A stretch of 64,000 bases of DNA, taken from the NCBI GenBank assembly GCA_002269645.1, contig NIVC01001664.1, positions 105,473 through 169,472 of the forward strand, read 5' to 3'. Under the pieces are notes generated by a model, which had not been told where the DNA came from, did not search any database, and saw only the letters and a program-made list of their open reading frames with translations. This DNA is from Macrostomum lignano (lineage: Eukaryota). Numbering within the stretch: the stretch's first letter is position 1; each line of letters begins with the position of its first letter. Shown here piece after piece: positions 7,401 to 43,767 of this stretch. Made by a program: the position numbers and the translations under genes.

Positions 7401-10097
7401 CTCGAGGAACAGTTAGCGTTTGAAATTTACCGATTTCCCGACTGCTTGCTAGAGAAGCTCGCAAGTTTATTCATTGAATTTCACTGCCAAGCTAATACAC
7501 ACGGCTGCCTATGGAGAAAAAAGGCGCCAATAATAAAACCAATTGAATCTCGACACAGTCCTGACTCCTATCTATCTGTTTACACTGTACAACTGCTATG
7601 TACACTCAGCCCAAGACCAACCCCCCGTTCTGGGGGGAATCATTAAATTCAACCCAACCCCCCAACACGCGGGGGGGTTTTATTTGCATTGAACGCAGAA
7701 CACGCGCACCCACCACCACTCAATACACAGCGGCCCGCGGGCGGAGGTTGGGGTGGCTATTTTTACAAACAGACTGCAACCCCTCCACTGGAGAGGCAGA
7801 GTGACCACAGAAGGGCCAAAGAAGGTTAAGAAATTAGTTTTCTGCTTTTTTAGGGATCTTAAAATGTAAAAATGAAAGATTAAAATTGCTATAAACCCAA
7901 TCCGGAAAATTTGCAGTTTACCCATATAAGTTTCAACGCTGACTTGTCAGTAGTCTAGGAGAAAAATTGCAACACACATACAGACAAACAAACAACGCAC
8001 CAGTTTTAGTATTAAGAGACGAGGCCAACTCCTCCTCTGGAGGAGAAAGGGGAAGAACTCCCATCACCGGAATTCCATTCCCTGAAATCCATCAGCTCAA
8101 ATTCCATGACTTGAATCCCATCTTCCAAATCATCTCCAAATCCTCTGTAAAGCCATAAAACCATATCTTGTTTTCCCTGTTCGCAAAAACTGACTGCCAT
8201 TGTCCAGACTCAGATTCTTCTGTCTCCTCTCTTCTCTTTTCTCTCCTCTCACGTCTCTCATCTCTACTACCTTATTTATCTCTTCTCCCTCGTCTTTCGT
8301 CTTTCTCTCCTGTCTCCTTTATCCCCTGTTTTCTCCTCTCTCCTCTCTTCTCTCCTCTCTCATCTCTCATCCCTCATGCCTCATCTCACTATTTCTTTCT
8401 CCTCTACTCTCAGCTCCTCTCTTCTCTCTCCTCTCATCTCTCCTGTCTCCCTCTGCTATCTCATATCTTCCCTCTCATCTCCTCTCTCCTCTTCTCTTCT
8501 CTCTCCTTCGTTCCCGCTTACTCCCCTCTTCTCTCCCATCTGTCATGTCTAATCTCTCGTCTCATTTCTACTCTGTTTTCTATCATCTCATCTCATCTCT
8601 CTTCTCTTTTCATTCTTCTCTTTACTCTCTTCTCTGACTGATTGAAGATGCCAAATCCATCCTCCTCTCCGCGAAGCAGAAAAATCCTGTCCATGCAACT
8701 GAAAACCATCGAAATCCTCTCCGTGAAACTGGACTCCTTCGAAATCATTTCCTTGAAACTTAAATCCATCAAAATGGTCTCCATAAAACAGAAATCAATC
8801 ATAAATTATCTCCGCGAAACAGAAATCCTCTCCGTGAAGCTGAACATCATCGAAATCCTCTCCGTGAAACTGAACATCATCGAAATCCTTTCCACGAAAC
8901 TGAACACGATCGAAATCCTCTCCACAAAACTGAACACCATCGAAATCCTCTCCACGAAACTGAACACCATCGAAATCCTCTCCACGAAACTGAACACCAT
9001 CGAAATCCTCTCCACGAAACAGAAATCCTCTTCGTCAAAATTAAAACATTGAAATCGTCTCCGCTAAACTGGACTCAATCGAATTTTTTCCATCAAACAA
9101 CTCAACTCTCCGGATTCATTGGTTAGGGTTAGGGTTAGGGTTAGGGTTAGAACTACGCACAGGTTTGTGTTAAAAGGCACTGATAAAAAAATATTGAACT
9201 AATTGAATCAATTCATTGCGCAACTGATTTCACAGTCAGTCAGTCAATCTAAATCAACCCTCCAATACACAGCAGCAGTGAGAAGTTGAACCCTCCCCCC
9301 AACTTTATCTATTACGTCTCGCAAAACTGATTACAATTTTGCAAAAAGTTAAAAGTATGGGAATAGTTTTCCCAATGAAAAGCTTTTAGTTTTCATATAT
9401 AAAGCAAACAACTTATATCCTCGAACTCTGCGTTGCAAGATCTTTCCAGCAATATAAGTGTCTCCTCTCAAAGTTTAAAACTCGAGGAACAGTTAGCGTT
9501 TGAAATTTACCGATTTCCCGACTGCTTGCTAGAGAAGCTCGCAAGTTTATTCATTGAATTTCACTGCCAAGCTAATACACACGGCTGCCTATGGAGAAAA
9601 AAGGCGCCAATAATAAAACCAATTGAATCTCGACACAGTCCTGACTCCTATCTATCTGTTTACACTGTACAACTGCTATGTACACTCAGCCCAAGACCAA
9701 CCCCCCCGTTCTGGGGGAATCATTAAATTCAACCCAACCCCCCAACACGCGGGGGGGTTTTATTTGCATTGAACGCAGAACACGCGCACCCACCACCACT
9801 CAATACACAGCGGCCCGCGGGCGGAGGTTGGGGTGGCTATTTTTACAAACAGACTGCAACCCCTCCACTGGAGAGGCAGAGTGACCACAGAAGGGCCAAA
9901 GAAGGTTAAGAAATTAGTTTTCTGCTTTTTTAGGGATCTTAAAATGTAAAAATGAAAGATTAAAATTGCTATAAACCCAATCCGGAAAATTTGCAGTTTA
10001 CCCATATAAGTTTCAACGCTGACTTGTCAGTAGTCTAGGAGAAAAATTGCAACACACATACAGACAAACAAACAACGCACCACTTTTAGTATTAAGA
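4443..10097 (-). mobile_element. Head-to-tail array of three non-autonomous Helitron-like units (4443-5939, 5940-8019, 8020-10097)
   Basis: Units 2 and 3 are near-identical with a 2080-bp period, and unit 1 is a shorter 1497-bp variant. On the minus strand each unit starts TC(C/T)TTA(A)TACTAAAA and ends with the hairpin CTCCTC-CAGAG-GAGGAG followed by TTGGCCTCG. Junctions read CTCG|TC with no TSD. Inside are a CT-rich tract, ~27-bp repeats and a short (TTAGGG)n run. The CTCG end is a non-canonical version of CTRR. Confidence 0.55.
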
Positions 10098-20771: not shown

Positions 20772-23394
20772 TGCTTGATAGCTGTAGCCACGTGGCTGGA
20801 AGCGCCTATACGAAATGGTTTTTGTCAGGAACAAGGAAAAAATGAATATAACTTAAATTTGCTTTGCAATGAAGTGAATAGTTTTTTCAATTATTGTCAA
20901 TAGTCAAGGTAGAAATTAATATTCGCGATCTATACATGCACTTTTGGTCATATAATTAGTATTGCAATGGGTTTAAACAACTGATATACAAGTTGAAACA
21001 CTTAAAACAATTAAGTACAAGTCTAAATAAAACTTTAAATTACGTGAAAAAGTATTAGCATTTGTTATAGCTTAGTATACCAGTAAAGATTGTATTTTAA
21101 ACTGAATGCGCTGGCTTTGAGATCGATGACGTGCTGTATTTTTTGCTGTCTTAATGTACGTTGTAAAATATGAGGTACTAAAGTAAGAACTAATGATAAA
21201 ATTCAGTGTAAAGTTTTATAAATGTTTTTACTCTCTATTCCAACACAGTAAAAACAAAAACAAAAATAAATTCTCCATATCCACGACCACTACTTTACAT
21301 TAGAAATTATAGGAAGTTTCTTTTTAACTAGAAGTGCTCTTTTGATAGCAGAAGTTTCATTGTGTTAAAGGACGAGAAACGAGAAAATATAGTTTTATTG
21401 ATATCAGTCTTACCAAGGTGTACTTTGTCAACAAGAATTTTCAGAAGGGTACGCTTTCGTTTCTATATCAGTTTTTTTTTAATTCCTCTAGCCATAAAAT
21501 TCTACAATTTGAAACACGATAACTGATACATATTTTAAATTTACAATTTTCCATTAAAATAACAAAGTTTTACTGCCATTCATAGAATGTTAATGAATTT
21601 AATTTGAATTTTTGTAACTTGTTTAGTTGCATGATTCATTATATAGCAACACCAGTCACTTTTATTTCCTGTCTTTAATTACATACTCGGATCGTTTTTT
21701 GTGAACACCACTCTACGATAAATCTTGTCTGCAACAAACAAATTTGCACAACAATACTCTACAAAGATGAAAATACATTTTAACGGCAAAAAAAACGCGA
21801 TTATTTGAATATAAATCGATCGAATGGTCATCTTCTTATAGTCAAGTTTTGTTTTCTTTGTTATAGACTGATCATCTACCATTAGTAAAGGAACCACTGT
21901 AAAAATTGCCGACAAGAAGGTGGCAAATTAACGGCAAAATGCTGCTGTATTTATCACCTTGGTCCCATTTTGCATTATTGGTGCTCGCCATTTCCGCGCG
22001 TATTTAGCGGCGCACCTTTCCGCCAATATGTGGCGCTTTACCGTTGCCTGCACTTAATTTTCTCAATTTGTGTTTACGAGTGCAAAACGGCATAATGTGT
22101 GTATATTTTAACTCTGAATTAATAATTCTTAATCTGAATTAATTATAACTTAAAAAACCTTCCGTACTGGTTTTATAATTATCTGGCCATTTGTATTTTA
22201 AATGTTCAATAATTAATTTCCGTCCGAGTGTTCGCAAAAAAAACAAAAACTGGGAATTTCGGTAAACAAAGACAGTAAGTATACACGCACGTTCGTAGCT
22301 ACACGCATTTATTGAGCAAAGTAATGACAAATCCTTGATTTGAGTGCTCAGCGCAGGAATTTAAAGCTACGACATGTACAATACACTTGTGTATGATTAG
22401 CGTGTAATTTGCCTTTTGAGCATTGAGGTATATATAGTGTACATATACGGACATTATTAATACATGTATTTTGTTATACACGCGCCCCTCTGCGAGCAGC
22501 AGCTGCCAGCTGTTGCCACAATCGTCAGTCGCCAGCTCTGTAAAATTTTGTCCTTCCGTAGCAGCAGGAGCTTTATATAATTTTTCGTCCCTATAGAATT
22601 TAACCCAAATCAATTCGCCTTCATATATGGGCCTTCTTGCAAAATGTTAGAGTCAATGGGGATCGAGAAGTTTGGTATACTTTTCTCTTTTCTTTTCCTA
22701 GTATTTCTCTCCCCCTCTCCCTTAAAATGGCACACCGAGGCGACAAACTCCAGTTGAATGGAGTGGAAGAACTGTACATCCGTGCTTCTAATCCGTTGTT
22801 GCTCAAGCCCCTATACAGAACTCGCTCAGTTGAGCTTTATAGTGCTCCAATTCCTGCTGCAATACCCGGCCAGCTCTACACCGAAACCGATCTTTCCTAC
22901 CCACTCGTCCGGTTCAGCGTTGAGACGTACGCCTACATAAAAAATTCAAGCGCAAATATTTCCAACGCAAGTCTAAGAGACCACTAACCCTGCAATTTCC
23001 TTCCCTATAACTTGATCTCTCACTGTCAGAATTGTAAGGAATTGCACACGCGGGTTGCTTGATTTTTCTTCCCACTGTCGGTCTCTTTCTATTTCCGTAC
23101 TAAATTCAGGCATATATTGGCCTCACTGGAAACTGTTGCACTGAATCTACAGATTCGTTAGAGCGCAGAAAATTCCAGACGGAAGAACTCCCGACCGCGT
23201 AGAGCAAGACGATCAGCCATCGTAGAGGCACTCCCGCAGCGGCGGCGGCGGCAGCGACAGCAGCGACTCACCAACCGGTGCCTTCAACCGGCTCTAGCGA
23301 CAATAGCGACGCAGACGACTCCGACGTCATCTGGGACAGCAGAGGAGGCAGCGGCATCGGCCTTGGACGGAGCGGAAGCGAAAAACGAAGACAA

Positions 23395-25979
23395 ATGTCG
23401 GGCAAATCGGCGGGCGTCGGCATAGCTGAAGGCCGCTGCACCGGCCCCGGCTGGAAGCGCTACGTAGTGGCGTGGCTCAGCTGCCTCGGCCTCATGGTGG
23501 TGCTGGCGATGCGCTCAGAGATGGGCATCGCCATTATCAAGATGACCAAAAAGCAACCGGAGAAGGTGGAGATGACCGCTCGGAATCACACCTACTACAA
23601 AATCGAGCTGGTTCAGGAGGTGGCCTGGGATCACCTGGACATTGGCATCATTGAGGCTTCATTTTTTATCGGCTACGCTTTGTTCAGCATACCGGCTGGC
23701 TTCATGTCGTCCTACCTGGAGCCAAACATGCTCTTGGGAAGCTCCGTGCTGATCACCTGCCTATTGAACATTGCCGTGCCGACGGCCGCTCATCTGGAGG
23801 TGCCGTCCGCCGCATTCGGCGTCACCCTCACTATCCGGCTGCTGCAGGGCATGGCCGAGGGCTGCCTCTATCCTTCCGTTCACGGCATCTGGCGATTCTG
23901 GGCGCCCGAGATGGAGCGATCCAAACTAGTGACGATTTCCTTCTTCGGCATGGCCCTCGGGCCCATTGTTGGCCTGCCGCTCTGCGGCGCCGTCACCACC
24001 AATCTGGGCTGGCCAGTGAATTTTTACATCTTTGGGGCGCTCGGCTGCGCCTGGGCGGTTGCCTGGTTCCTCATCGTGCACTCTAGGCCGGCAACCGATC
24101 CCTACATCAGCCCGGAGGAGCTGGCCTACATTGAGAGCAGCAGCGTGCCAGCCACAGCTACAGGCCAGGTGCCTTGCGCAGCGATGGTCAGGTCGCTGCC
24201 CGTTTGGGCCATCGTATTTGCCAACGTCGGGCGCAACTGGAGCTTCCAGTTCAGCATGATCGGCCTGCCGGCCTATTTCTCGCGAGTGTTCGATTTGAAT
24301 AGCGAGGAGGTTGGAATTTATTTAATGATTCCGTTCCTGCTCATGGCCGGGCTCACGCCAGTTGGTGCGTTCTTTTTAAAGCTTTTCAAGAAATGCCCAG
24401 TTCAAAGTCTGCTTTCAGTTCTGTCCATTTTATTCAAGCTTTTCAATTGCTTTTAGATATACTATTATAATAAGTTTTCAACCTTTCTAAAATTTGCTTC
24501 TTAACTCGCTCTCCAGCTCAGCCCTTGATTCTGCCTCTCCGTTACCTCATCCTTGAGTCAGCCTCTCCGTTCCCTCATCCTTGAGTCAGCCTCCCCGTTC
24601 CCTCATCCTTGAGTCAGCCTCTCCGTTCCCTCATCCATGAGTCAGCCTCTCCGTTCCCTCATCCTTGAGTCAGCCTCCCCGTTCCCTCATCCTTGAGTCA
24701 GCCTCTCCCCGTTCCCTCATCATTGAGTCAGCCTCTCCGTTCCCTCATCCATGAGTCAGCCTCTCCGTTCCCTCATCCTTGAGTCAGCCTCCCCGTTCCC
24801 TCATCCTTGAGTCAGCCTCCCCGTTCCCTCATCCTTGAGTCAGCCTCTCCCCGTTCCCTCATCCATGAGTCAGCCTCTCCGTTCCCTCATCCTTAAGTCT
24901 GCTTCTCCGTTCCTTTATCATCCTTGAGTCTTCCTTCATTGTAAAGTCTGAAGACTGCGGTTTAAGCTGAGCGAGAAAAAACGTGAGGCCCAAACTGGCC
25001 AAGTTAGCGATTATATATTTGAGGTTCTAAAAGTGAACAATACGATGTACATGAATTATGCAAACCAAGATGTACATTTATGTTAGAATATAACTCACTC
25101 ACTAAGAACAAATCGATAACAATATTGCGAGGCAATTAGATTAATCATCCTTGAGTCTGCCTCTCTGTTCCTTCATACTTGAGTCAGCCTCCCCGTTCTC
25201 TCATCTTTGAGTCAGCCTCTCTTTTCCTTCATACTTGAGTCAGCCTCCCCGTTCCCTCATCCTTGAGTCAGCCTCCCCGTTCCCTCATCCTTGAGTCAGT
25301 CTCTCCGTTCCCTCATCCTTGAGTCAGTCTCTCCGTTCCCTCATCCATGAGTCAGCCTCTCCGTTCCCTCATCCTTGAGTCAGCCTCTCCGTTCCCTCAT
25401 CCTTGAGTCAGCCTCTCCCCGTTCCCTCATCATTGAGTCAGCCTCTCCGTTCCCTCATCCTTGAGTCAGTCTCTCCGTTCCCTCATCCTTGAGTCAGTCT
25501 CTCCGTTCCCTCATCCTTGAGTCAGTCTCTCCGTTCCCTCATCCTTGAGTCAGTCTCTCCGTTCCCTCATCCTTGAGTCTGCCTTTCCGCTATTAAGCAA
25601 ACTAAACCCAACCTAAATTAGCGTCTTTCGTAACAATCCTAGAAAAATACTATAAAAATACTCCCGCAAGTATGCTAAATGGATCTTAAACTCTCCCTGA
25701 AAATTGCAGGTGGCACCCTTGCCGACTGCGTTCGTCGCAAGTTCCTGTCCACCACGGCGACGCGTCGTCTATTCAACACTGTCGGGTTCGGCGTAATGGC
25801 GGCCTGCCTAGTTGTTGTGGGCATCTCGCGCAATCTCTACCTGTCCACAGCCTTCCTGACCATAGGCTTGGGCTTCACGGGGATTGGCATGTCCGGCTAC
25901 GGCGTCAACCATTTGGACATTGCGCCCAGATTCGCTGGATTCCTGATGGGCATCTCCAATGGTGTTGGCACCGTGTCAG
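23395..25979 (+). CDS. SLC17-family (sialin/VGLUT-like) MFS anion transporter, exons 1-2; 3' end not found
   Basis: Exon 23395-24364 (first in-frame ATG, though the start could lie in an upstream exon) and exon 25710-25979, joined by a phase-1 GT-AG intron. Motifs: [81 protein letters not shown]. A donor gtgagc follows at 25980. Confidence 0.85.
24530..25590. repeat. Intronic minisatellite, 28-bp unit, interrupted by a ~210-bp unrelated segment (~24935-25143)
   Basis: Tandem ctctccgttccctcatccttgagtcagc. Confidence 0.9.
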
Positions 25980-27526
25980 GTGAGCGCCAGACTGTCGAAC
26001 TTTGCTGGTTGGCAAATGAAACAGAGGGAGGGCTACTGAATGCAATCGATAAATTGTCGGAAAAGTCGGCTGAAAACCCTACAAGAGAGGGACTTGGATA
26101 AAGTGTCTCGGGTTTGGTCCCGAGCTCTACTTGATCGCGCTTTACATGTAGCTCGTAGCTATACATGTTCCACTGATTGACAAATGTATCCTTCATCCTA
26201 CGATGACCAATCGAGTACTTCTGATTATTTTTTGTTATTCCTGCCGTCCTAAATACTTTTTACTAACGTCGGGTGAACGTCTGTGTAAGGTATAAAACGT
26301 ATTGGTCACGTATGGACGTCGCCGATTGAGAACGTCTGATCGCTCGTTAGAGTAGCGGGATTTAATGTTGATTTTTTTCAATTTGATTTTTGATGCAACA
26401 ATCTTAGCTCACTAAAAATTTGGTTGACATTGTGTGATACTCTAGGGTAAGAGATAGAAGCCAGAGGGGATGATGTGTTGATAATGATAACCAATCAGAA
26501 GGCAGCGAGAGGAAGGGAGAAGAACACGCATAAGTAAGACCTTAGGGTAAAGGATAGAAGCCAGAGGGCACGAGGTGATAACCAATCAGAAGGCATCGAG
26601 ATAACATGTGAGATAAGAGCGTTAAGTTATTGCAGAGAACTAAATTACATGACTAAAAGTTTACAGGTGAGCCAGAGAAGGCCTGCAGACGAATCTGAAA
26701 ATGATTATAGTTTTAAATATTTTTTTGCATCAAATATTATAAACCCTAAGACGCATCCCTATCAAGGCCATCAGTCACCAGCTCATACGAGAGACATGTT
26801 TCTCAAATTCGGTTCAGTTGGTGTTTGAGTGTGGTCCATGGGAAAAAATTTTTAGTTCCCTACTAAATTGTACCTATTTTTATAATTTAAGTGCGCTTGC
26901 AATTCGGGCCTGTTCTTAAACTGCATAGCCTTTTAATGCCATAAGTTTCATAAATAGCCTCAGTGATGCATTAGAGCCATAAATTAATCCTTTAATATGT
27001 CGCTTTCGCAGTTGTGCGTTAACTTTCATCACATAATCGTGTTTAATTTAATCGTTATAATAATCAGCTACATATTACTTAAATGCCTGCATGTATGCAT
27101 ATGCTAATATATATGTTACTGTTTATTTTAGCTTATACCTCGACAAAGCCCCAAAGCAAAAACCCTTATATTGATATCATTCTACAATACAATCGACTCC
27201 GACTATATACTGTATAGAAGTCTTTATTTATAGATGTTGCTTATATTTTTCTTTTTGAAAAAGGCTCGCTACTTTTTTTGTTTCAATGCCTCGCTTATAA
27301 ATAAGCTGACTCGCTTATTTATAAGCTTATAGATTTATGGTGAATGGGAATATCGCCTGAATATATTGATTATTTCTTGTTTAATAAACGTGATTTCATT
27401 GGTTATGAGAGATTCGGAAGCGAAACATGTGATTTCAATTAATTGAATTGTATTAATGCACTTGCCACAGTGCAAGGAAAGTAAAAAATATTTTTCATTA
27501 AACTAACTTAACAATAGGAATACCAA

Positions 27527-31800: not shown

Positions 31801-34737
31801 CATGCATGCAATCAACAGGAAAGATTAAATTACTATCAGAGTATGATCATATTTTTCGATTTATCTACATGTACACGTAGCTCGTATTAAGGTTTGTTAT
31901 AAGTCTAGAAGCGTGCGCGTTTTTTCAACTTGATGCAATCACTATATGAAGTGCACTTGTGGTCGCTGAATTCACCATGTGAAATTGCAGAAAACCGCTC
32001 TCATTTCTCAACCGGAAGAAGGACAAATCGAAGGGAAGCACTGATCAGTTGCTAAGCACATCGAATTTTCCGCACGACGTGCCAGAAAAAGTGAAATCTC
32101 TATTCGAAGTGAGTCAATTTTCATTGCCAAATCTTAGAGATGATGGTTTTTAAATGACCGCACCTCTTGTCAAGAACTTCATGTAAATTCTCTTATTTAG
32201 TTAATAAACAAAGCTTTTGCAACGGCCTCAATTCTATCGCATTCAAGCTTCTCCAAAAGAAGCAATATGCATTGAAAGGAAAAGCCAGTGACATGGCCTT
32301 TACATTACAGTATAGGATAGATAGTTTAAGATTCAGCATCTAAACAGGAAGTGGTACTGGGCCAGTTGGCTACCAACGGAGCCAGTGTAAGAAAATTTAC
32401 GGTCAATTTTTTTCAATCATAAGCCTCACTGGGTTGCACAAATTTACGCAAATTGGCAGCGGTTTACTGCTTTCCAAGCTCTCTAATCTGTTACGCTTTA
32501 CAGTTTAACGATGTTTGCAATGCGTAGCTTTGCTTACCAAATTGACGTGCATAGCAATTTTTCTTGCGATTACTGTGTTATCAGTCTGGTCTATATTAAA
32601 ATTAAATTATTCAAGCAACAGCTAAGGATTCTATGCGAGAGAACCAGTCAGTATGCAAAGAACTGTTAAAATGCAAGACGCTCTACTAATAAGTAGCTAT
32701 GGCGAATCAAAGAGAAGTATAGCGAAGTAAATACTAGTAGACAGATTTTGTTAGGAAGAATTGAGAAATGAGATGAGAAGAATGAGAAATGAGAAGAATT
32801 GCTATTGTGAAGTTATAACACTCGAAGGCCGGATAGAGAGGCTTTGCGAGCCGCCATGCGGTTCGCAGTCCAGAGTTTGCCGACCCCTTCAACAAAACGT
32901 CGACATCTGATAGGCCACATCATCCGCGCTGAGGCTTTCTACCCACAACCCGTACAGGATGTGCTGCTACTGCTGACGCTGCAGGCATCCTTTGGCTTAA
33001 GGATTCTATCTCTTAAGTTTTGAGGCGCTTTCAAGACCTTTTGTGACAGTGTGCCCTGTTATCTTTGTTGTTAGGAAAGGAATTAGACAAAATTGATTAT
33101 TGTCCATCGCAGATAATGCCGAGCACCCGTCTCATCGCCACAGTCTACACCTCAAATGCTGTTAATACACCGGCTGTTAAGAAGCAAAAAGCTTTGATAA
33201 TAGAAAACGGCAAGAATAAGCGCTACACGGTCGACGGCAAGTCCCGGTCAGTCTGGCTGGATCCGCCTGCCGGGGAGAAGGTGGAGATTTGGAAGGAGTA
33301 CTTTGGCGACGATGGAGAGTGCAACAGAGCTCTGGGCAGGCTGCCCGGCACTGACAAGTGTGAGTCTGCTGCGTGTAGGGCCAACGGTGACATAGGGTCA
33401 TGGAACATCTGTGCTCAACAGTGACAAGTGTGAGTCTGCTGTGTGTGGGTCATGGAGCAGCTGTGCTCAACAGTGACAAGTGTGAGTCTGCTGTGTGTGG
33501 GTCATGGAGCAGCTGTGCTCAACAGTGACAAGTGTGAGTCTGCTGTGTGTGGATCATGGAGCAGCTGTGCTCAACACTGACAAGTGTGAGTCTGCTGTGT
33601 GTGGGTCATGGAGCAGCTGTGCTCAACACTGACAAGTGTGAGTCTGCTGTGTGCAGGGTCAATGGCTCATGGAACAGCTGTGCTCAGCACTGACAAGTGC
33701 GAGTCTGCTGTGTGTGGGTCATGGAGCAGCTGTGCTCAACACTGACAAGTGTGAGTCTGCTGTGTGTAGGGTCAATGGCTCATGGAACATCTGTGCTCAA
33801 CAGTGACAAGTGTGAGTCTGCTGTGTGTGGGTCATGGAGCAGCTGTGCTCAGCACTGACAAGTGTGAGTCTGCTGTGTGTGGGTCATGGAGCAGCTGTGC
33901 TCAGCACTGACAAGTGTGAGTCTGCTGTGTGTAGGGTCAATGGCTCATGGAACAGCTGTGCTCAACAGTGACAAGTGTGAGTCTGCTGTGTGTGGGTCAT
34001 GGAGCAGCTGTGCTCAGCACTGACTAGTGTGAGTCTGTTGTGTGTGGGTCATGGAGCAGCTGTGCTCAGCACTGACAAGTGCGAGTCTGCTGTGTGTGGG
34101 TCATGGAGCAGCTGTGCACAGCACTGACAGGTGAGAGTCTGCTGTGTGTGGGTCATAGAACAGCAGTGCTCAGCACTAACCAGTGTGAGTCTGCTGTGTG
34201 TAGGGTCAATGGCTCATGGAACAGCTGTGCTCAACAGTGACAAGTGTGAGTCTGCTGTGTGTGGGTCATGGAGCAGCTGTGCTCAACACTGACAAGTGTG
34301 AGTCTGCTGTGTGTGGGTCATGGAGCAGCTGTGCTCAACACTGACAAGTGTGAGTCTGCTTTGTGTGGGTCATGGAGCAGCTGTGCTCAACAGTGACAAG
34401 TGTGAGTCTGCTGTGTGTGGGTCATGGAACATCTGTGCTCAACACTGACAAGTGTGAGTCTGCTGTGTGTAGGGCCAACGGGTCATGGAACATCTGTGGT
34501 CAACACTGACAAGTGAGAGATCCTGAAAGGTAGTCGAAAAGTTGGTATAGTATTTTAGCTTTATTGATTCAGATAAAATTGAAAAACATTTCAGACGGCT
34601 ATATCCTACGAGATGAGATCGACCCCGAAGGAGAATTCCTCAGCCGAGAGGAGAAAGAAGCATATAAAGAAGTGCTGGAAAAGCTGGTCATGTTTCAGTA
34701 CATCTACGGCAATGAAGATGACGAACAGTACATGTGA
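28833..34737 (+). CDS. Uncharacterised 7-exon gene, paralog B (~419 aa)
   Basis: Exons 28833-29150, 29290-29297 (8 nt), 29472-29633, 30766-31029, 31991-32108, 33113-33359 and 34595-34737. All are GT-AG with phases 0,2,2,2,0,1 (1260 nt). The C-terminal domain NFPHDVPEKVKSLFEIMPSTRLIATVY...TDKYGYILRDEID...MFQYIYGN aligns with paralog A. Confidence 0.72.
29670..30470. repeat. Intronic minisatellite, ~31-bp unit
   Basis: Tandem ggatggtagggagcggctaggggaggaatca. Confidence 0.9.
31115..31695. repeat. Intronic minisatellite, 45-bp (22+23) unit
   Basis: Tandem acagatattcctaacaacaatctacagatattcctacagcaatct. Confidence 0.9.
32830..33000 (+). pseudogene. Short LINE (RTE-like) 3' remnant inside paralog B intron 5
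   Basis: Translates to QSLPTPSTKRRHLIGHIIRAEAFYPQPVQDVLLL, resembling the 'RRL.L.GHI.R' post-RT thumb region of RTE elements. Confidence 0.4.
33349..34516. repeat. Intronic minisatellite, ~51-62-bp units (paralog B intron 6)
   Basis: Tandem cactgacaagtgtgagtctgctgtgtgtgggtcatggagcagctgtgctcaa. Confidence 0.95.
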
Positions 34738-35544
34738 TGGCATTCAAGTACTCCAAGCTCTACAACTGACTGCCTATTAGTTGTTTTAAACCTTAAGAAC
34801 AGTAAATAAGTGTCGATTATTTGTGAACATTTTAATCTGCTCAAGCTTCTAAATTGTCGCTAATCAATCCCATCAATCCTTCAAATACACACGCAATCCT
34901 ATAGTCTTCAATATGGAATTTTACGAGTACAAAACTCTACAGTTTTTAACAATAAAAGTTTGAAAACAACAATGACGAATTTAGCCATCTTTTTTAAATT
35001 TTCATTGGCATTTTATTTGAAGAATCTAGTCATGTATTATACGCTATTATAGTATCAGTATGAGCGCTTATTTTTTAAGTATTTGAGATGGACTAGTAGC
35101 TGCAGAAAATATCCAGTGGGGAAGCAAACACCATTACTTGTATAATGGTATAATCTATGACGATAAATAAACTTAGGATAGACAAAAACGCTGTATGGAA
35201 TTGCTAAGTTAATTTGCGATTGTGTGTAACAGTAATAAAATCCACCATATCAACCCATGTGTAAATAGAGTCAATATAGGCAGTGTGTATTAATTATCAC
35301 TTCAGATCATTCAGTCCGTTGCGCAATTTAAAGTCCGCCAGGTCTGAAATGATTGAATTTCAATATTGTCACTTATAGTTTTTGATAAAAAACTAATATT
35401 TAAAAAATTGGTGAGATACTAGAAAAAAAGAAAAAGGCACACGGGGTAAAGTGCTGAATTGCTGTGGCTCATGAGGTCAAGGTAGGGTTCAGCCAAAAAG
35501 AATTGTCCTGTCAATCATAGAAGACTCGTGGGGGAATCGCTAAG

Positions 35545-35895
35545 ATGTCAAGGCTCTTGGGGGGAATGGCTGAGTTGTCAAGGCTCTTGGGGGGGGAGCT
35601 GAGTTGTCAAGGCTCATGGGGGAATGGCTGAGTTGTCAAGGCTCATGGGGGGAAGCTGAGTTGTCAAGGCTCATGGGGGAATGGCTGAGTTGTCAAGGCT
35701 CATGGGGGGAATGGCTGAGTTGTCAAGGCTCATGGGGGGAATGGCTGAGTTGTCAAGGCTCATGGGGGGGAATGGCCGAGTTGTCAAGGCTCATGGGGGG
35801 AATGGCCGAGTTGTCAAGGCTCATGAGGGGATGGCTGAGTTGTCAAGGCTCATGGGGGATGGCTGAGTTGTCAATGCTCATGGGGGATATTGCTG
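35545..35895. repeat. Minisatellite, ~31-bp unit
   Basis: Tandem ggggggaatggctgagttgtcaaggctcatg. Confidence 0.9.
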
Positions 35896-36452: not shown

Positions 36453-39400
36453 TCACCTATGCACCGGGCCCTGCTGGCCGCTCATCTGACCCATCGAGTA
36501 GCCGTAGGTTGGCATAGTGGGATACATGGACGGCTGACCGATGCCCATGACAGGGTTCTGGCCTGGATAGAACAGACCCGGTTGTTGCACCGACATGAGC
36601 GGATGGGTCACCGGTTGCATCCGTGGCGCCGGCCTGCGACGTAGCGGCATCTCCTGCGGAGCTCCGGGCATGGAGATGAGCATCGAGTCGAGCTTGCAGC
36701 CGCACTGCCCGACAGTCAAGCTGGAGTCGCCGCGGCAAAACGCTTCCTCGAGCTTGTCGTTGAGGCCGGGCTCTGGAAGAATCTCAACGGAGCTCCAGGC
36801 GCCGTGGCTGCCAAGGAAGAACCAGCGCCAGTTGGTGGCCAGGGGCCGGTGGAGGCTGGCGCGGCTCTCCGTGCGGAGGCAGCGGAGGCCGCCGGGAGGC
36901 TTCAGGTGTCCCGAGACCGACCGAATCTCGAATCTATCGGCCGAACCGGCAACGAACGACAGCGTCAGCTGACCGGGGAACTCGGAGCCGAGCTCGCCGC
37001 TGCCGACCGTCACCAAGTCGGAGCGGTCGGGCTGGCAGAAGGCCGCCTCCAGCTGCTCGTTCAGCGCGGCGTCCACGTCCTGCCAGCGGCCCGGCGGCCA
37101 GTGGGCGGCCCGCCACTGCCACAGATAAGGGACCTTGTGAGGGCAGTGCCGCCGAGGACAATTCTGGGAGAAGCATTCGTGCCGGAGGAACTCCTCGCAC
37201 AGGGTTTCCTCGCTAGGAGCGGCACGAGACGCCTTTGGATTGGCGGCGGCTGAGGCAACGGGCAGCTTTTGCTGCGCTTTTGGGCTGCTGCCGAGTTTCA
37301 ACTTTGCAATGTTTGGCACACTGCCTGCGGACAGCTTGTTTTGGCGCTTGCTTTGCAAGTCAGCCTTCTGCTGCTGCTGTTGCTGTTGTTGTTTTTTTAG
37401 CCCAGCAGTGTCGGGTTCACTGGATAAATCGGAAGCAACAGAATGAGTCTTCTGCTTTTTCTTTTTCTGATGCTGCTGCTCCTGCGGTTGCGGCTTTAAG
37501 CCGACGCCTTGAGCGGCATTAATATTTAATAGGCTAGGCACTTCTGGCTTGGCCTTTTTGCCCTTGGCCTGCTCGGAAGAGGCCAAATCCTTTGGTTTCG
37601 ATAAATCTTGCTGAGAGGCCGCGGCTGGAGGCTCGGGTTTTTCGTTTGGGTTGGTGTTGGGCAGCGGGGCGGGAATCAGGAAAGACCTGAGCACGTGACC
37701 AGGCTCCATCTCGTCCATGTCGAAGGGGTTCAGCTTCATCTTTGTCTGCTCATCCATGCTCAGCACGTGCTGCCTGCGGCAGCGGCACTTGCCGCACTGC
37801 TTGAACTTGACGTTGTTGCACAGGTGAATGTCGGCACAGTCAGCTTGTTGACAGCCGGATTCTGAGTTGTAGGCTGAGCACACCTTCGGGTGGCTGGCCA
37901 GCAGCAGGTTGAGCACCTCCCGCTGTTTCAGGCCGTCTGCGATGCCCAAAGCGCTGCGAATTCGGTGGTTGCGGCCGCTGAGGTCGTGGCAGAGCCTGCA
38001 GTCCGCCTGAGGAATGCGGATGGGGCATTGGGGCATTATTTAATGAGGGACTTTGAGCTGTGGGATTCTGAGCAGTGGGGCTGTGAGCTGTGGGATTTTG
38101 AGCTGTGGGATTCTGAGCTGTGGGATTCTGAGCAGTGGGGCTGTGAGCTGTGGGATTTTGAGCTGTGGGATTCTGAGCTGTGGGATTCTGAGCAGTGGGG
38201 CTGTGAGCTGTGGGATTTTGAGCTGTGGGATTCTGAGCTGTGGGATTCTGAGCAGTGGGGCTGTGAGCTGTGGGATTTTGAGCTGTGGGATTCTGAGCTG
38301 TGGGATTCTGAGCAGTAGGGCTGTGAGCTGTGGGATTCTGAGCAGTGGGATTCTGAGCTGTGGGATTCTGAGCAGTGGGGCTGTGAGCTGTGGGATTCTG
38401 AGCAGTGGGGCTGTGAGCTGTGGGATTCTGAGCAGTGGGGCTGTGAGCTGTGGGATTCTGAGCAGTGGGGCTGTGAGCTGTGGGATTCTGAGCAGTGGGG
38501 CTGTGAGCTGTGGGATTCTGAGCAGTGGGGCTGTGAGCTGTGGGATTCTGAGCTATGGGATTCTGAGCTATGGGATTCTGAGCTGTGGGATTCTGAGCTG
38601 AGTAATTAACTTCATGTTGCAGACTCAGTTGCGGGATGAGACTGATTGCAGGAAGGGGATATTGATCAAATCAAATTGCACAATTCAAACGCATCTCCCC
38701 ACCTTATCATGCACTTTGCCGTCGGGGTCGGCCAGAAACCACAGGCACAGGTGCAGCTGGCAGCAGTCCGCATTCTGGCAGGACTTCGGTGCCCCGTTGT
38801 GCATCGGGCAGATGCGGAAGCGGCGAAACACATTCACGCTGACCGGCTGTCCGCTCACAGCATCCTTGTAGATGTCAATCATGCTCTGCAGCGGCTTCAT
38901 CAACTCGTCGATGCTGTCCCGCCACTGCTCCAGCGGGAAGCCGCTCGGCAGTTTCAGGTCGGCCAGCAGCTCCGACGGTGCGGCTCGGCCGCTGCGGCGA
39001 ATCAGCGCGGCGTAGGCGGAGCGAAGGCCGAGGCCGAGGGCCGACACGTCGGGCAGCGGGGGCGGCAGGCTCGGGGTGGCTTTTTTAGCAGTTGGTTTCT
39101 CCTCAGCTGTAGCAGCCTTCTGTTTGGATTTTGTGGCCTCTTTAGCCTTGGCCTTATCGAATTTAGCTGGCTTAGTATTGTCCGGCGGATCGACCTTAGC
39201 GCGTCTCGGTAGCGCAGCCGGCACCAGATAGGAGCGAAACACAAGACTGAGCTTCTCGTCAGCCAGCCCGTAGGCCTGCAGCTTTGCCACGCTGTCCTGC
39301 TCCAGTTTGTGCTGCCTAAGACAGGCGCAAGTGATCTGTGTCTGCTTTTTATTAGCCTTGTCAATGCTAGCCTGCAGGCCGGAGCGTAGAGCGTTGTTGC

Positions 39401-42400
39401 ACACGTGGATGTAGGGACAGTTGGGTCGGCTGCAGCCCGGCTCAGTGTTGTAGTCTAAGCAGACATTCGGATGACATGCACGTAGCAGACTAATAATATC
39501 GGCCTGTTTGTATTTCACACCAATGCCCAGCGCCTGTCGAATCCGATGGTTCCGACCGAATAGGTCGTGACACAGCTGGCATTTTGCCTAATAGGAGATG
39601 AATTATATTTTGCTAGTGGTTAAAAAGAAAATTTTCGCAGCCCATTTGGGCCTACACATATTATTGAATTTAATCCGAGATACGTTTGCCAAAGTGAGCT
39701 TTTGTCTATGGTAGCAAATGGGTGGCACAGCAGCATTTAATTTGGTCCAACAACAAGCATCAATTTGGTCCGTAGCAACTGTTTCGGAGGAGCAAGATCA
39801 GCCCCAGAATTGTGGACCATATGCTAGGCTGTCTCGAACTCGAACGAATGCCATTGGCTTCTGATTGAACACCCAAATGACATTACAAGGTTGCTTAATG
39901 TAAAAGAAAAGATGGTTTACAGCATTAATCAGCGCGTTAAAACCACTGCCGGCAGAGCTCGCCTGCAAAAGGATAGCAATCGCCAAGGCAAGTTGCTCAA
40001 GAGCCTCAAGTCCAACTGCTACTCGATGCAGTTGAGTCGAACCCTTGTTGACGTTGCCGAAATGCAACAGAAGTTGAAGGAACAGTTCCAGTTGGTTATC
40101 AGATCTCGACTATGAGCAGAGATCTGGAAGAGCGACTGAAAATTGTCGGTAGAGACGCTGACATTCCAGCGGTACGCAACAGCCCACAGATGGTTGCGAG
40201 AATTCAAGAGCTTGGCCGACTGGCTCACGAGCGTTTGGACAAAATTGATGCTTGTTAGACCAAATTGAATGCCACTGTACCAGCCTTGCTACCATAGACA
40301 AAAGCTCCATTATATTGGCAAACGTATTGGATTAAATTCAATGAGCGTAAGCCCAAATGGGCTGCAAAAAGCTATAGCCGTCGCTATTTTTATTATTCAA
40401 AACATTTCTTACAGTTTTGTCCTCAGTTCTGACTCAGCTGTTTTCCACCAACGGGTGCTTTGCTGACCCCTGAGCCAGCGTCTGTTTAATAATATGCGCT
40501 ACGGCCCCGGTGGGAAATAATTGTCCCAGCAAAGTCTGCAATTCTGCCAACTAAGCACTACTATTCCAATTGGCACAGTTATGCTAATCAGCATATTACT
40601 GTGCCAAACGGAACAAATTGCACAGTTGTGGAAAAGTTAAAACTGCGAATTTTTGTTACGAATCAAGAATTTTTTTTTATTTTTTCCCTTTTTCGTGTGC
40701 CATTTGACACCGTTAAGGGACAATTATTTCCCGACGGGATACGTTGATATTTTAAAAAAATGGGCTCCTAGATTTATGAAGGAACCCTCTTCTAGACTCG
40801 TTAGTTGTTGACTAGTCACGTCGCAAAACAGTCTTCATGCTGTTTCCACTTCATTATTTGGATGAGACTGATTGCAGGAAGGGGATATTGATCAAATCAA
40901 ATTGCACAATTCAAACGCATCTCCCCACCTTATCATGCACTTTTCCGTCGGGGTCGGCCAGAAACCACAGGCACAGGTGCAGCTGGCAGCAGTCCGCATT
41001 CTGGCAGGACTTCGGTGCCCCGTTGTGCATCGGGCAGATGCGGAAGCGGCGAAACACATTCACGCTGACCGGCTGTCTGCTCACAGCATCCTTGTAGATG
41101 TCAATCATGCTCTGCAGCGGCTTCATCAACTCGTCGATGCTGTCCCGCCACTGCTCCAGCGGGAAGTCGCTCGGCAGTTTCAGGTCGGCCAGCAGCTCCG
41201 ACGGTGCGGCTCGGCCGCTGCGGCGAATCAGCGCGGCGTAGGCGGTGCGAAGGCCGAGGCCGAGGGCCGACACGTCGGGCAGCGGGGGCGGCAGGCTCGG
41301 GGCGGGCTCAGGTGCGGGCGCAGGGGCGGGCGCAGGGGCGGGTCCGGGGACACCGGCCATGGTAGGCAGGGAGTTTCGCAGCGCAGCGGGTACCAGGAAG
41401 GATCTGGCGAGGAAGTTCAGGTTGCTGTCGTCCAGGCCGAACCTGGCCAGCTTGGCCGCCGTCTCCGGGTCCTTGGCGGCGGGCTCCAGGACGTGCCGCC
41501 TGTGACACGGGCACAGCTGCTTAGCCAGCTTGTTTTCCCTGTGCAGCGCGTTGTTGCAAATGTGAATGTCGGGGCAGCGGGCATCGGAACACCCGCTGTC
41601 TGTGTTGTACTTGGCGCACACTGCCGGGTGGCTCGCACGCAGCAGCTCGAGGACCTTCTGGCTGCCGACTGCGCCGAGGCCAATGCGGGCAAGCAGCTGC
41701 GGGCGGGTGAATGATTAGATGATGGCTGTGATGACGAGTACAACTGGAGCTGCAGGTGACTGATTGGATGATGGCTGTGATGACGAGTACAGCTGGAGCT
41801 GCAGGTGACTGATTGGATGATGGCTGTAATGACGAGTACAGCTGAAGCTGCAGGTGACTGATTGGATGATGGCTGTGATGACAAGTACAGCTGGAGCTGC
41901 AGGTGACTGATTGGATGATGGCTGTGATGACGAGTACAGCTGGAGCTGCAGGTGACTGATTGGATGATGGCTGTAATGACAAGCAGGTGAATGATTGGAT
42001 GGCTGTGATGACAAGCAGGTGAATGATTGGATGGCTGTGATGATGAGCACAGCTGGAGCTGCAGGTGATAGTGGGAAATCGCGATGACAGCACAAAACAG
42101 CAGTTTTTGACAGCATGAAACAGCACAAAACAGCTATTACTGACAGCACAAAACAGCAATTACTGACAGCACAAAACAGCATTATTTACAGCCTAAAACA
42201 GCAATCAGCAATCACTAAAAGCATAAGACAGCAATTGCTCATAGCACATAATAGAATATACTGAGTCACTGACAGCATAAAACAGCATAAAATAGCATTA
42301 CTGACAGCATAAAACAGCACAAAACAGCAATTACTGACAGCATGAAGCAGCACAAAACAGCAATTACTGACAGCATGAAGCAGCACAAAACATCAATTAC

Positions 42401-43767
42401 TGACAGCACAAAACAGCAATTACTGACAGCACAAAACAGCAATTACTGACATCTCAAAATGGCAATTACTGACAGCATGAAGCAGCACAAAACATCAGTT
42501 ACCGACAGCACAAAACATCAGTTACTGACAGCACAAAACATCAGTTACCGACAGCACAAAACATCAATTACTGACAGCACAAAACATCAATTACTGACAG
42601 CACAAAACATCAGTTACTGACAGCACAAAACATCAGTTACTGACAGCACAAAACAGCAATAACTGACAGCTCAAAACATCAGTTACTGACAGCACAAAAC
42701 ATCAGTTACCGACAGCACAAAACATCTATTACTGACAGCACAAAACATCAATTACTGACAGCACAAAACAGCAATAACTGACAGCACAAAACAGCAATTA
42801 CTGACAGCACAAAGCAGCAATAACTGACAGCACAAAACAGCAATAACTGACAGCACAAAACAGCAATTACTGACATCACAAAACGGCAATTACTGACAGC
42901 ACAAAACAGAAATTACTGACAGCACAAACAAAACAGCAATTACTGACAGCACAAAACAGCATCTACTGACAGCATGAAGCAGCACAAAACATCAGTTACC
43001 GACAGCACAAAACATCAATTACTGACAGCACCAAACAGCAATTACTGACAGCACAAAACAGCATCTACTGACAGCATGAAGCAGCACAAAACATCAGTTA
43101 CCGACAGCACAAAACATCAATTACTGACAGCACAAAACAGCAATTACTGACAGCATGAAGCAGCACAAAACAGCAATTACTGACAGCACAAAACCGCAAT
43201 TACTGACAGCACAAAACAGCAATTACTGACAGCACAAAACCGCAATTACTGACAGCACAAAACAGCAATTACTGACAGCACAAAACAGCAATTACTGACA
43301 GCATGAAGCAGCACAAAACATCAGTTACTGACAGCACAAAACAGCAGTTTACAGACCTCCTTATTGCGCGCATCTCCCAGTCCGTGAACCAGACCGCACT
43401 GTCCATTGTGCACCCTTCCATCTGGGTCGCCCAGCCACCACAGACAGAAGTGCAGCCGCTTGCACTTCGGATTCGTGCAGCTGTCCTTGGCGCCATTGTA
43501 GAACTGGCAAATTCGAACACAAGGATAAGCATTGAGCCGCCCCTCACACAGAATGAGCTTCCCGCCTGGCTGATCTGACAGCCACTGATCCAGTGGGAAA
43601 TTTGATGCCAATGCGAATCTCTTCAGGAATTCTGGCACCGTGGCGCTGCCGCCTGCAGTCAGCAGGAAGTTCAAAACATTGTCCAGCGTCAGCAATGGCG
43701 CTGACTGAATGTGCCGAAACACATGGTCAAAGTTCAGAGCGTCCTTGTATGGCTCCTGCTTCTCCAT
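36453..43767 (-). CDS. ZAP (ZC3HAV1)/PARP12-like CCCH zinc-finger + WWE protein with triplicated N-terminal module and no PARP domain (~1205 aa)
   Basis: Exons 43767-43357, 41696-40929, 39587-38703 and 38006-36453, all phase 0 GT-AG. Three copies of [helical domain + 4 fingers], e.g. [43 protein letters not shown]. These are followed by a Q/K-rich linker, a further finger [18 protein letters not shown] and two WWE-like units ([25 protein letters not shown]; [22 protein letters not shown]), then a stop. Confidence 0.8.
38045..38600. repeat. Intronic minisatellite (15/24-bp subunits)
   Basis: Tandem gagctgtgggattct / gagcagtggggctgt. Confidence 0.95.
40506..40739. mobile_element. MITE-like element with ~22-bp TIRs in a ZAP-like intron
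   Basis: cccggtgggaaataattgtccc versus gggacaattatttcccgacggg. Confidence 0.5.
41715..42065. repeat. Intronic minisatellite, ~54-bp unit
   Basis: Tandem gattggatgatggctgtgatgacgagtacagctggagctgcaggtgact. Confidence 0.9.
42085..43350. repeat. Intronic minisatellite, 23-bp unit
   Basis: Tandem actgacagcacaaaacagcaatt with variants. Confidence 0.95.

Follow-up and report, generated by a model that had tools for sequence, protein, structure and literature searches.

A 64,000-nt stretch of Macrostomum lignano DNA (the window) was found to carry a PARP12/ZAP-family (ZC3HAV1) gene whose predicted product begins with three modules in tandem and has no ADP-ribosyltransferase domain. For this reading, together with the history and mechanism proposed below, we estimate a probability of roughly 0.6. 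The predicted protein consists of the three modules, disordered linkers, a ZnF5-WWE1-WWE2 domain and a low-complexity tail, with the extra module lying on a symmetric phase-0 exon (exon 3). A module is the N-terminal nucleic-acid-binding unit typical of the family, made up of a winged helix and four zinc fingers.

Gene model and domain content

Four open segments, all in phase 0 and with canonical AG|..|GT borders, join on the minus strand from 43767 to 36453 into a reading frame of 1205 aa. The window is colinear with a M. lignano contig in GCA_002269645.1 (locus L001) at 92-98% identity, and the first-pass annotation was right in assigning the gene to an invertebrate, here a flatworm. The features are listed below in the direction of transcription, followed by the central domain and the repeats.

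43357-43767, minus strand: exon 1, 411 nt; ORF with a GAG|GT donor
41697-43356, minus strand: intron 1, nearly all minisatellites with 23/33/46/69-nt and 49-nt units
40929-41696, minus strand: exon 2, 768 nt; AG acceptor, GT donor, phase 0
39588-40928, minus strand: intron 2, with a MITE-like foldback insertion inside (inverted arms at about 39632-39771 and 40237-40370)
38703-39587, minus strand: exon 3, 885 nt, extra cassette-type exon; AG/GT borders, phase 0
38007-38702, minus strand: intron 3, 30-nt minisatellite in 18.5 copies
36453-38006, minus strand: exon 4, 1554 nt, TGA at the end; 97% identity to L001
35328-35343, minus strand: possible terminal exon of 16 nt after a CAG acceptor; same junction in PAA55276.1 (L001)
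36624-37223, minus strand: ZnF5-WWE1-WWE2, aa 950-1149, inside exon 4; from Pfam WWE, the 7KZH profile and AF2/Foldseek
40860-41302, minus strand: copy A of a 443-bp repeat, the 3' part of exon 2 and 69 nt of intron 2; from self-BLAST
38634-39076, minus strand: copy B of the 443-bp repeat, the 3' part of exon 3 and 69 nt of intron 3; from self-BLAST

Exon 1 (aa 1-137) holds the ATG, with an in-frame TAA two codons 5' of it, the winged helix, finger 1 and the entire finger 2 of module 1; it is 97.8% identical to M. lignano proteins and 99.0% identical to L001 at the nucleotide level. Exon 2 (aa 138-393; 98.6% identity to L001) completes module 1 with fingers 3-4 and runs through a Pro/Ala linker into module 2, of which it encodes the winged helix, finger 1 and the first part of finger 2. 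Exon 3 (aa 394-688) finishes module 2 with the remainder of its finger 2 and with fingers 3-4 and, past a Lys/Ala linker, opens module 3 with the winged helix, finger 1 and the first part of finger 2. The rest of module 3 (the remainder of finger 2 and fingers 3-4) is found in exon 4 (aa 689-1205), followed by a 142-aa Lys/Gln-rich linker, ZnF5-WWE1-WWE2 and the tail, which is rich in Gln, Pro, Gly and Met (also given as Q/P/G/M/Y).

Exon borders and module borders thus do not coincide. An internal exon combines two half-modules across a linker: a back half, from within finger 2 to finger 4, and the front half of the following module, from the winged helix through finger 1 into finger 2. In module 1 the intron lies 14 codons more 3' than in modules 2 and 3. 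The symmetric phase-0 exons described in the first-pass annotation are borne out.

The stop codon of exon 4 overlaps a good splice donor, CATAG|GTGAGC. If the terminal mini-exon is used, exon 4 ends at 36457 and the end of the protein changes from ...VHR to ...VHRPGGL, by addition of PGGL. The exact predicted products of 914 and 1209 aa had no match in the protein collection searched.

The modules (aa 9-246, 278-522 and 573-806) can be aligned end to end with all Cys and His residues of the four fingers invariant, and hmmsearch found three full-length copies. Three modules of four fingers plus ZnF5 give 13 zinc fingers, the number counted in the first-pass annotation; its description of one gene-like ZAP/PARP12-family unit with three N-terminal modules is likewise supported. 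Pfam zf-CCCH_PARP12 was seen in each module below threshold (14-20 bits against a cut-off of 27). The ZAP RNA-binding domain (RBD) in the PDB was matched by phmmer with an E-value of 3.5e-4, and 6L1W and 6UEI with E-values of about 1e-3 to 1e-4.

An AF2 model of module 3 (pLDDT 85.6, pTM 0.80) was compared with the PDB using Foldseek. The sole significant matches were the ZAP RBD entries 6UEJ, 6L1W, 3U9G and 6UEI, with E-values of 2e-7 to 2e-6 and probability 1.0, but the global superposition was poor (TM 0.38-0.45, rmsd about 11 Å).

Finger 2 reads C-LW[WF]L[GA]DPDG[RK]V-H-x3/4-C-x3-H in all three modules, the C-H-C-H arrangement noticed earlier. It is C-x11-H-x3/4-C-x3-H, without the second cysteine; a canonical ligand is missing, and the finger might not bind zinc. 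Among 276 module copies of relatives, 254 have the canonical CCCH form. The variant is a genuine lineage-specific oddity.

The fifth CCCH finger and the two WWE units are supported by profile and fold matches. Pfam WWE scored 26.3 bits, over the gathering cut-off of 21.1, and a family profile matched the ZAP central domain 7KZH with an E-value of 1.4e-41. This profile was required, as phmmer with the C-terminal region of the window protein alone gave no match in the PDB. The AF2 model of the ZnF5-WWE region (pLDDT 86.4) matched 7KZH in Foldseek with an E-value of 5.7e-9, TM 0.63/0.73 and rmsd 3.6 Å.

A PARP domain was sought using tblastn with three PARP12-like C-termini; none was found in the window, as the first-pass annotation had stated, or in L001. 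The reading frame ends at 36453, or past the 4-codon terminal exon. A PARP domain is missing also from ZAP-S, ZC3HAV1L and 'a few species' (PMC8102003), so its absence here is compatible with membership of the PARP12/ZAP family.

Two or three modules

A competing explanation, which we consider less likely, is that the gene yields a protein of just two modules: exon 3 would be always skipped or be a silent relic, and exons 1, 2 and 4 would give a product of 910-914 aa. The annotation points in this direction. PAA55276.1, the GenBank model of the colinear L001, is the sole annotated transcript model for a locus of this kind; in it exon 2 is followed directly by exon 4, and it equals exactly exons 1, 2 and 4 plus the mini-exon. 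The paralogous locus L002 is entirely without exon 3. Neither all of exon 3 nor its unique half had a match in a large protein collection, in a weak word-index search that also missed the known relatives P0001-P0003. Exon 3 is also conserved no better than intron 2.

Against this, in two copies exon 3 stays open over 885 nt, has an AG acceptor behind a good polypyrimidine tract and ends at a donor identical to that of exon 2. It is intact in L001 (98.3% identity, in a copy diverged by 2-3%) with splice sites kept; 15 substitutions and an in-frame indel of 6 nt separate the two copies. In the unique half, 4 synonymous and 4 non-synonymous changes give a dN/dS of 0.30, a value based on only 8 changes. 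This half keeps all zinc ligands and the family motifs at only 44-48% identity to its sister halves, which requires long purifying selection. Short-read assemblies would merge the copies of the 374-nt exonic repeat, which are 99% identical, and thereby lose exon 3 artificially.

Higher conservation of exon than of intron was considered as proof that exon 3 codes, and was rejected: the contrast, 98.3% against 97.6% for intron 2, is too small.

We predict a three-module product; that exon 3 is spliced in is deduced from the sequence alone. Skipping of exon 3 keeps the frame, and both two- and three-module isoforms are accordingly possible. In the mechanism that we propose for the three-module protein, single-stranded RNA would be bound via as many as twelve CCCH-type fingers, grouped into three beads that flexible linkers connect. 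Three beads could allow multivalent, higher-avidity binding of long RNAs, or of several motifs. The WWE domain and the low-complexity tail may serve in partner binding or recruitment to granules, without catalysis. That the protein takes part in defence against viruses or transposons is plausible only by analogy with the family.

Contact residues for CpG and ADP-ribose

The first-pass annotation had suggested a ZAP-like antiviral sensor, binding CpG-rich viral RNA via each module and poly(ADP-ribose) via ZnF5-WWE. The antiviral activity of ZAP sensu stricto goes with the cofactors TRIM25 and KHNYN. Both domains are homologous to those of ZAP at the family level, and vertebrate members of the family are antiviral (PMC8102003). 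We consider this reading very unlikely.

The CpG contacts of ZAP are K89, Y98, K107 and Y108 in finger 2 (PMC8102003). We read the corresponding positions of module 3 from a HMMER alignment to 6UEI, anchored at C88, C106 and H110, and those of modules 1 and 2 via the module alignment. They are L/G/R/L in module 3, L/G/Q/L in module 2 and L/G/G/L in module 1. Three of the four contacts are replaced non-conservatively in every module, and only in module 3 is K107 conservatively replaced by Arg; a CpG pocket, checked module by module, is thus conserved in none. ZAP sensu stricto arose from PARP12 in tetrapods, and CpG specificity belongs to the tetrapod ZAP lineage (PMC8102003). Being from a flatworm, the window gene lies outside the tetrapod ZAP clade and is for this reason not a ZAP ortholog. 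Host coding sequence at the locus is not depleted in CpG (o/e 0.87-0.90), so CpG would not mark non-self. The RNA specificity of the predicted protein is probably not CpG.

For poly(ADP-ribose), the pocket is formed by a buried Gln (ZAP Q668/RNF146 Q153), a stacking aromatic residue (W611/Y107) and the phosphate contacts S673 and T675, and Q668A/R abolishes binding in ZAP (PMC8853533). Residue numbering in the window WWE2 was set by matching Q668, S673 and T675 to their places in the 7KZH chain. Q668 is replaced by Ile, S673 by Ala and T675 by Gln; W611 is Phe, which keeps the aromatic, and R682 is kept. These replacements speak against the proposed poly(ADP-ribose) binding, and the predicted WWE2 pocket is unlikely to bind ADP-ribose in the manner of ZAP.

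A Maverick/Polinton-type virus-like element lies 6.5 kb upstream of the gene. This adjacency is no evidence of an antiviral role.

Module history and comparison with relatives

Copies A and B of the 443-bp repeat are 99.1% identical, and modules 2 and 3 share 97.4% identity in their front halves. The three back halves show 44-48% pairwise identity, and from this equal divergence we infer that the triplication of the module is old. The 443-bp stretch of modules 2 and 3 would have been homogenised recently, most simply by gene conversion. Recombination between the two repeats would remove precisely the unique part of exon 3, and we propose this as the origin of the two-module paralog at L002. 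Neither the window nor L001 has the 283-aa N-terminal extension or the alternative C-tail of the UniRef proteins P0001 and P0002, models that are therefore assigned to L002.

An origin of the third module in an assembly error, such as the mis-joining of a haplotype or paralog or the collapse or expansion of a repeat in a polyploid genome, is hardly credible: the 99.1% repeat flanks the region, the introns are rich in minisatellites and the diverged copies L001 and L002 could favour mis-joins, but L001 (GCA_002269645.1) has exon 3, intron 2 with the MITE and intron 3 in the same order at 92-98% identity, and the unique half of exon 3 is at most 48% similar to any other part of the locus.

The first-pass annotation had named common multi-module forms in databases as a ground for rejecting its claim, and such forms are indeed frequent. 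Of a sample of 152 family proteins, 75 have at least two modules, 34 at least three and 7 have four or five. Among them are RefSeq and GenBank predictions for corals, for a nemertean and for M. lignano. Montipora XP_068694759 ('ZAP-like') has three modules, WWE and PARP; Tubulanus XP_074654097 (isoform X2) has three modules and WWE without a PARP domain, and M. lignano PAA76514.1 has three four-finger modules and WWE, also without PARP. Tandem modules being common in predicted invertebrate relatives, the window gene opens no new kind of system.

The one-module layout of vertebrate ZAP/PARP12 is thus not the rule, as about half of the closest family representatives are predicted to have 2-5 modules, a layout on which the main evolutionary paper on ZAP is silent. 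The Macrostomum locus neatly illustrates the ways in which the number of modules may change, by means of an exon in phase 0, gene conversion and repeat-to-repeat deletion, and exon 3 would be an unannotated exon added to the gene set of a model flatworm. A wider interpretation is speculative and on balance doubtful. Tandem ZAP/PARP12-module arrays would be unrecognised, widespread multivalent RNA sensors of invertebrates (corals, nemerteans, molluscs, amphioxus and flatworms). In the Macrostomum branch they would have been re-tooled, with a Cys/(Asp or His)/Cys/His finger 2, neither a CpG nor an ADP-ribose pocket and another RNA specificity, and with module number tuned by a skippable phase-0 exon and repeat-mediated deletion between paralogs. 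In the literature searched we found no experimental characterisation of PARP12-like/ZAP-like multi-module relatives, and nothing relevant on Macrostomum PARP12/ZC3HAV1 or on multi-copy ZAP RNA-binding domains.

Among the closest relatives are the M. lignano paralogs PAA76514.1/A0A267FTE2 (1158 aa), PAA55276.1 (906 aa, partial), A0A1I8GJV8 ('PARP12') and A0A1I8H8H3, with 95-98% identity across the exons that they share with the window gene. They have the finger-2 variant, the WWE region and the absence of PARP in common with the window protein, but none has the middle module of exon 3. PAA76514.1, A0A1I8GJV8 and A0A1I8H8H3 carry instead an N-terminal module that is missing from the window and L001; it has no winged helix, and its finger 2 is canonical. 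The linker and C-terminal tails of these three proteins are also unlike those of the window protein.

PARP12 and the invertebrate PARP12-like/ZAP-like proteins, for example Montipora XP_068694759, Acropora XP_029187541, Tubulanus XP_074654097, Pomacea XP_025082025 and Branchiostoma XP_019646028, have the same module and the same ZnF5-WWE1-WWE2 in the same order as the window protein. Many of the invertebrate ones carry 2-5 tandem modules. Most full-length ones retain the C-terminal PARP domain that the window protein is without, and the WWE2 Gln, which is Ile in the window protein, is kept in 11 of 14 relatives.

ZC3HAV1L (mammalian ZAP-like) has a four-finger RNA-binding domain and, like the window protein, no PARP domain (PMC8102003); unlike it, ZC3HAV1L has a single module and no ZnF5-WWE. 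ZAP has one N-terminal module where the window protein has three, and finger 2 of the latter is without the second Cys present in ZAP. The short isoform ZAP-S (ZC3HAV1/PARP13) shares with the window protein the winged helix and four fingers, a disordered linker and ZnF5-WWE1-WWE2. Both are, as predicted for the window gene, products without PARP domain, and a donor overlaps the stop of the last large exon. There is no PARP exon within the window and hence no counterpart of ZAP-L there.

Gene structure and repeated modules

The candidate gene was read directly from the minus strand as four long open segments between 43767 and 36453, the borders of which were checked:

43767-43357, minus strand, exon 1 (E1), 411 nt
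41696-40929, minus strand, exon 2 (E2), 768 nt
39587-38703, minus strand, exon 3 (E3), 885 nt
38006-36453, minus strand, exon 4 (E4), 1554 nt

A pyrimidine tract and AG precede every acceptor, and GT follows every donor. The four lengths are all multiples of three, which means that all junctions are in phase 0, and the joined segments form a reading frame of 1205 codons. The TGA stop of exon 4 (36455-36453) overlaps a consensus donor. In PAA55276.1, the GenBank model of a colinear Macrostomum lignano locus (L001), a 16-nt terminal exon encoding PGGL and a stop is reached from this stop-overlapping donor, and the same exon lies in the window at 35343-35328, minus strand. The introns are mostly minisatellites, with copy numbers that differ between the window and L001. 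A MITE-like foldback in intron 2 was found in L001 too. The following repeats were located in the introns and the 3' flank:

38047-38600, minisatellite array, 30-nt unit
41706-41980, minisatellite array, 49-nt unit
42087-43346, minisatellite array, units of 23-69 nt
34000-34519, minisatellite array, 52-nt unit
35530-35886, minisatellite array, 30-nt unit
39632-39771 and 40237-40370, imperfect inverted arms (~140 nt) of the foldback in intron 2, enclosing ~465 nt

The predicted protein gives three full-length matches to a profile built from the three modules, each consisting of a winged helix and four zinc fingers, at amino acids 9-246, 278-522 and 573-806. The copies align end to end, and the cysteines and histidines of all four fingers are invariant:

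Finger 1: C-x10-C-x4-C-x3-H
Finger 2: C-x11-H-x3/4-C-x3-H
Finger 3: C-x8-C-x4-C-x3-H
Finger 4: a longer C...C-x-C-x3-H

Together with ZnF5, the three four-finger modules give the 13 fingers counted in the first-pass annotation. The linkers between modules are Pro/Ala-rich and Lys/Ala-rich. C-terminal to the modules come a 142-aa Lys/Gln-rich linker, ZnF5 with tandem WWE domains, and a tail rich in Gln, Pro, Gly, Met and Tyr. The exons are offset from the modules, such that each internal exon starts with the back half of a module, continues through a linker and ends with the front half of the following module. In modules 2 and 3 finger 2 is interrupted by the intron, which in module 1 comes 14 codons later.

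Finger 2 had been described as C-H-C-H. Its second cysteine is indeed replaced and an invariant histidine is present, but the C-H-C-H ligand set is only one of two options. Where ZAP has C96 as second ligand of this finger, the window modules have a proline flanked by aspartate, and the replacement ligand may be either this aspartate or the invariant histidine twelve residues past the first cysteine. The family consensus at this position is cysteine (254 of 276 module copies), and the variant lacking it is essentially restricted to Macrostomum winged-helix modules.

Family assignment and ZAP-specific residues

The protein is a PARP-less member of the PARP12/ZAP family with two or three tandem nucleic-acid-binding modules, and the family and architecture originally assigned to it hold. 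Searching the PDB with the whole protein sequence, only the ZAP RNA-binding domain (RBD) was matched (6L1W, E 3.5e-4; 6UEI, E 8.7e-4), and each module contains the Pfam PARP12-type finger tandem with a score under the cut-off. An AlphaFold2 model of module 3, zinc-free and computed from 25 module sequences, reached a pLDDT of 85.6 and a pTM of 0.80. Its significant Foldseek matches in the PDB were four ZAP RBD entries only (~223 columns, probability 1.0), followed by MarR-type winged helices, consistent with the helical N-terminal part. Superposition on the ZAP RBD gave a global TM-score of 0.38-0.45 and an rmsd of ~11 Å, which means that the local fold agrees with ZAP, but the sub-domains of the zinc-free model are arranged differently relative to one another. 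In the C-terminal region Pfam WWE is above cut-off, and a 15-sequence family alignment matches the ZAP ZnF5-WWE1-WWE2 structures (E 1.4e-41). The ZnF5-WWE model (AlphaFold2, pLDDT 86.4) fits 7KZH, the ZAP central domain, with TM-scores of 0.63/0.73 and an rmsd of 3.6 Å. A tblastn search of the window with C-terminal queries from three relatives, each containing the PARP domain, found no such domain.

The two binding functions known from ZAP fare less well. ZAP contacts CpG through K89, Y98, K107 and Y108 (PMC8102003). In the PDB sequence-search alignment, where the invariant C88, C106 and H110 serve as anchors and the numbering fits all four contacts, the corresponding residues of module 3 are L, G, R and L. 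According to the alignment of the three window modules, they are L, G, G and L in module 1, and L, G, Q and L in module 2. The proposed CpG sensing is not upheld. The observed/expected CpG ratio of the gene is 0.87 for coding sequence and 0.37 for introns; the neighbouring MFS ORF gives 0.90 and the whole window 0.69. With a host coding ratio this high, based on two genes only, CpG content would not tell foreign from host mRNA.

In WWE2 of ZAP, Q668 hydrogen-bonds adenine and the second phosphate is held by S673 and T675; the mutants Q668A/R and W611A no longer bind poly(ADP-ribose) (PMC8853533). The window WWE2 has Ile for Q668, Phe for W611, Ala for S673 and Gln for T675, and keeps R682; of the 14 aligned relatives, 11 retain the glutamine. 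Judged by these pocket replacements, ADP-ribose binding in the manner of ZAP is unlikely, contrary to what had been suggested.

Sister loci, probable module history and possible use of exon 3

The closest proteins are all from M. lignano. L001 (NIVC01002777.1, GCA_002269645.1) is colinear with the minus strand of the window from ~47.4 to 26 kb, including the downstream MFS transporter gene, with an identity of 92-98%. Accordingly, the window represents a second copy of the L001 locus in M. lignano or a very close relative, which may be an allele, a homeolog or another assembly. The neighbourhood comprises:

23278-26101, plus strand, convergent downstream neighbour of the zinc-finger gene, an MFS_1 transporter gene (Pfam E 3.8e-30) common to window and L001
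50251-61592, Maverick/Polinton-like virus-like element, 6.5 kb upstream of the zinc-finger gene
51134-52420, minus strand, double-jelly-roll capsid-like ORF of this element (Pfam DJR-like 24.3 bits, under cut-off)
54099-55118, plus strand, A32-type packaging ATPase of the element (above cut-off)
57197-59407, minus strand, protein-primed type-B DNA polymerase of the element, its frame interrupted at least once (ORFs read unjoined and unrepaired)

Several further ORFs of the element gave no family match. Elsewhere in the window, identical sets of low-complexity ORFs at 6088-6972 and 8168-9052, 2080 bp apart, indicate a direct duplication of ~2.1 kb.

A more distant paralog, L002 (NIVC01000815.1, 10001-17731), encodes PAA76514.1 of 1158 aa and lacks both exon 3 and a PARP domain. 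This protein has an additional four-finger module at its N-terminus, in which the winged helix is missing and finger 2 is a canonical CCCH finger, and its linker and C-terminal tail differ from those of the window protein. Module number and type thus vary among the paralogs of one species.

The back halves of modules 1-3 share 44-48% mutual identity. Among the front halves, that of module 1 shares ~41% identity with the other two, which are 97.4% identical to each other and correspond in the DNA to a 443-bp repeat (99.1% identity) reaching 69 nt into the following introns. The simplest reading of these identities would be that the triplication is old and that gene conversion occurred recently. 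If the two repeats recombined, the segment lost would be exactly intron 2 and the unique half of exon 3, a 510-nt part outside the repeat (39587-39077), and the structure of L002 may be the product expected from such a deletion.

Several observations favour the use of exon 3. It has good splice signals of the same type as its neighbours and an 885-nt open frame, and retains all its zinc ligands while sharing 44-48% identity with the sister halves. In L001 it is present with the same splice sites, and it is intact in both copies, between which there are 15 substitutions and an in-frame indel of 6 nt; the unique half has a dN/dS of 0.30, from 8 changes only. On the other hand, exon 3 is skipped in the sole annotated model, PAA55276.1, where exon 2 is joined straight to exon 4. 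Its unique half was found in no protein of a large collection, a weak negative as the search tool behaved oddly with the whole exon, and exon 3 is barely more conserved between window and L001 than intron 2 (98.3% for exon 3 against 97.6%). Since the near-identical repeat would collapse in short-read transcript assembly, with loss of exon 3, the annotation is not decisive. We consider the chance that a three-module mRNA exists somewhat better than even, and exon 3, as a candidate unannotated cassette exon altering module number, is of modest interest.

Predicted function and multi-module relatives

The tandem modules would bind single-stranded RNA multivalently, probably with a target motif other than CpG, and the WWE domains and tail could serve in partner binding or granule recruitment. 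Only the analogy with vertebrate relatives makes a role in defence possible.

Invertebrates have ZAP/PARP12-related genes, a few of them without a PARP domain (PMC8102003); multi-module family proteins were not described in the literature searched. The profile built from the three modules matched 346 proteins among 1.84 billion cluster representatives (E <=1e-3). The best 150 of these and the Macrostomum proteins were re-scanned locally, counting only matches of at least 100 profile positions. At least two modules were found in 75 of the 152 proteins, at least three in 34, and four or five in 7. Multi-module forms are thus common in databases and the architecture is not unusual, as opposed to the rarity first supposed. 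The modest points of interest left are the cassette exon changing module number and the lineage-specific finger-2 variant.

Two modules occur in the 'PARP12-like' proteins of Pomacea and Branchiostoma. Three are found, as in the window protein, in Acropora millepora XP_029187541, and also in the 'zinc finger CCCH-type antiviral protein 1-like' of Montipora foliosa and M. capricornis, where they are combined with ZnF5-WWE-PARP. M. lignano PAA76514.1, which does not belong to the tabulated sample, combines three finger modules with the WWE region of the window protein and ends without a PARP domain. All five isoforms of Tubulanus polymorphus LOC141908132 carry three modules, and within the 152-protein sample its isoform X2 has the exact combination of the window protein, in which three or more modules and a complete ZnF5-WWE1-WWE2 occur without a PARP domain.
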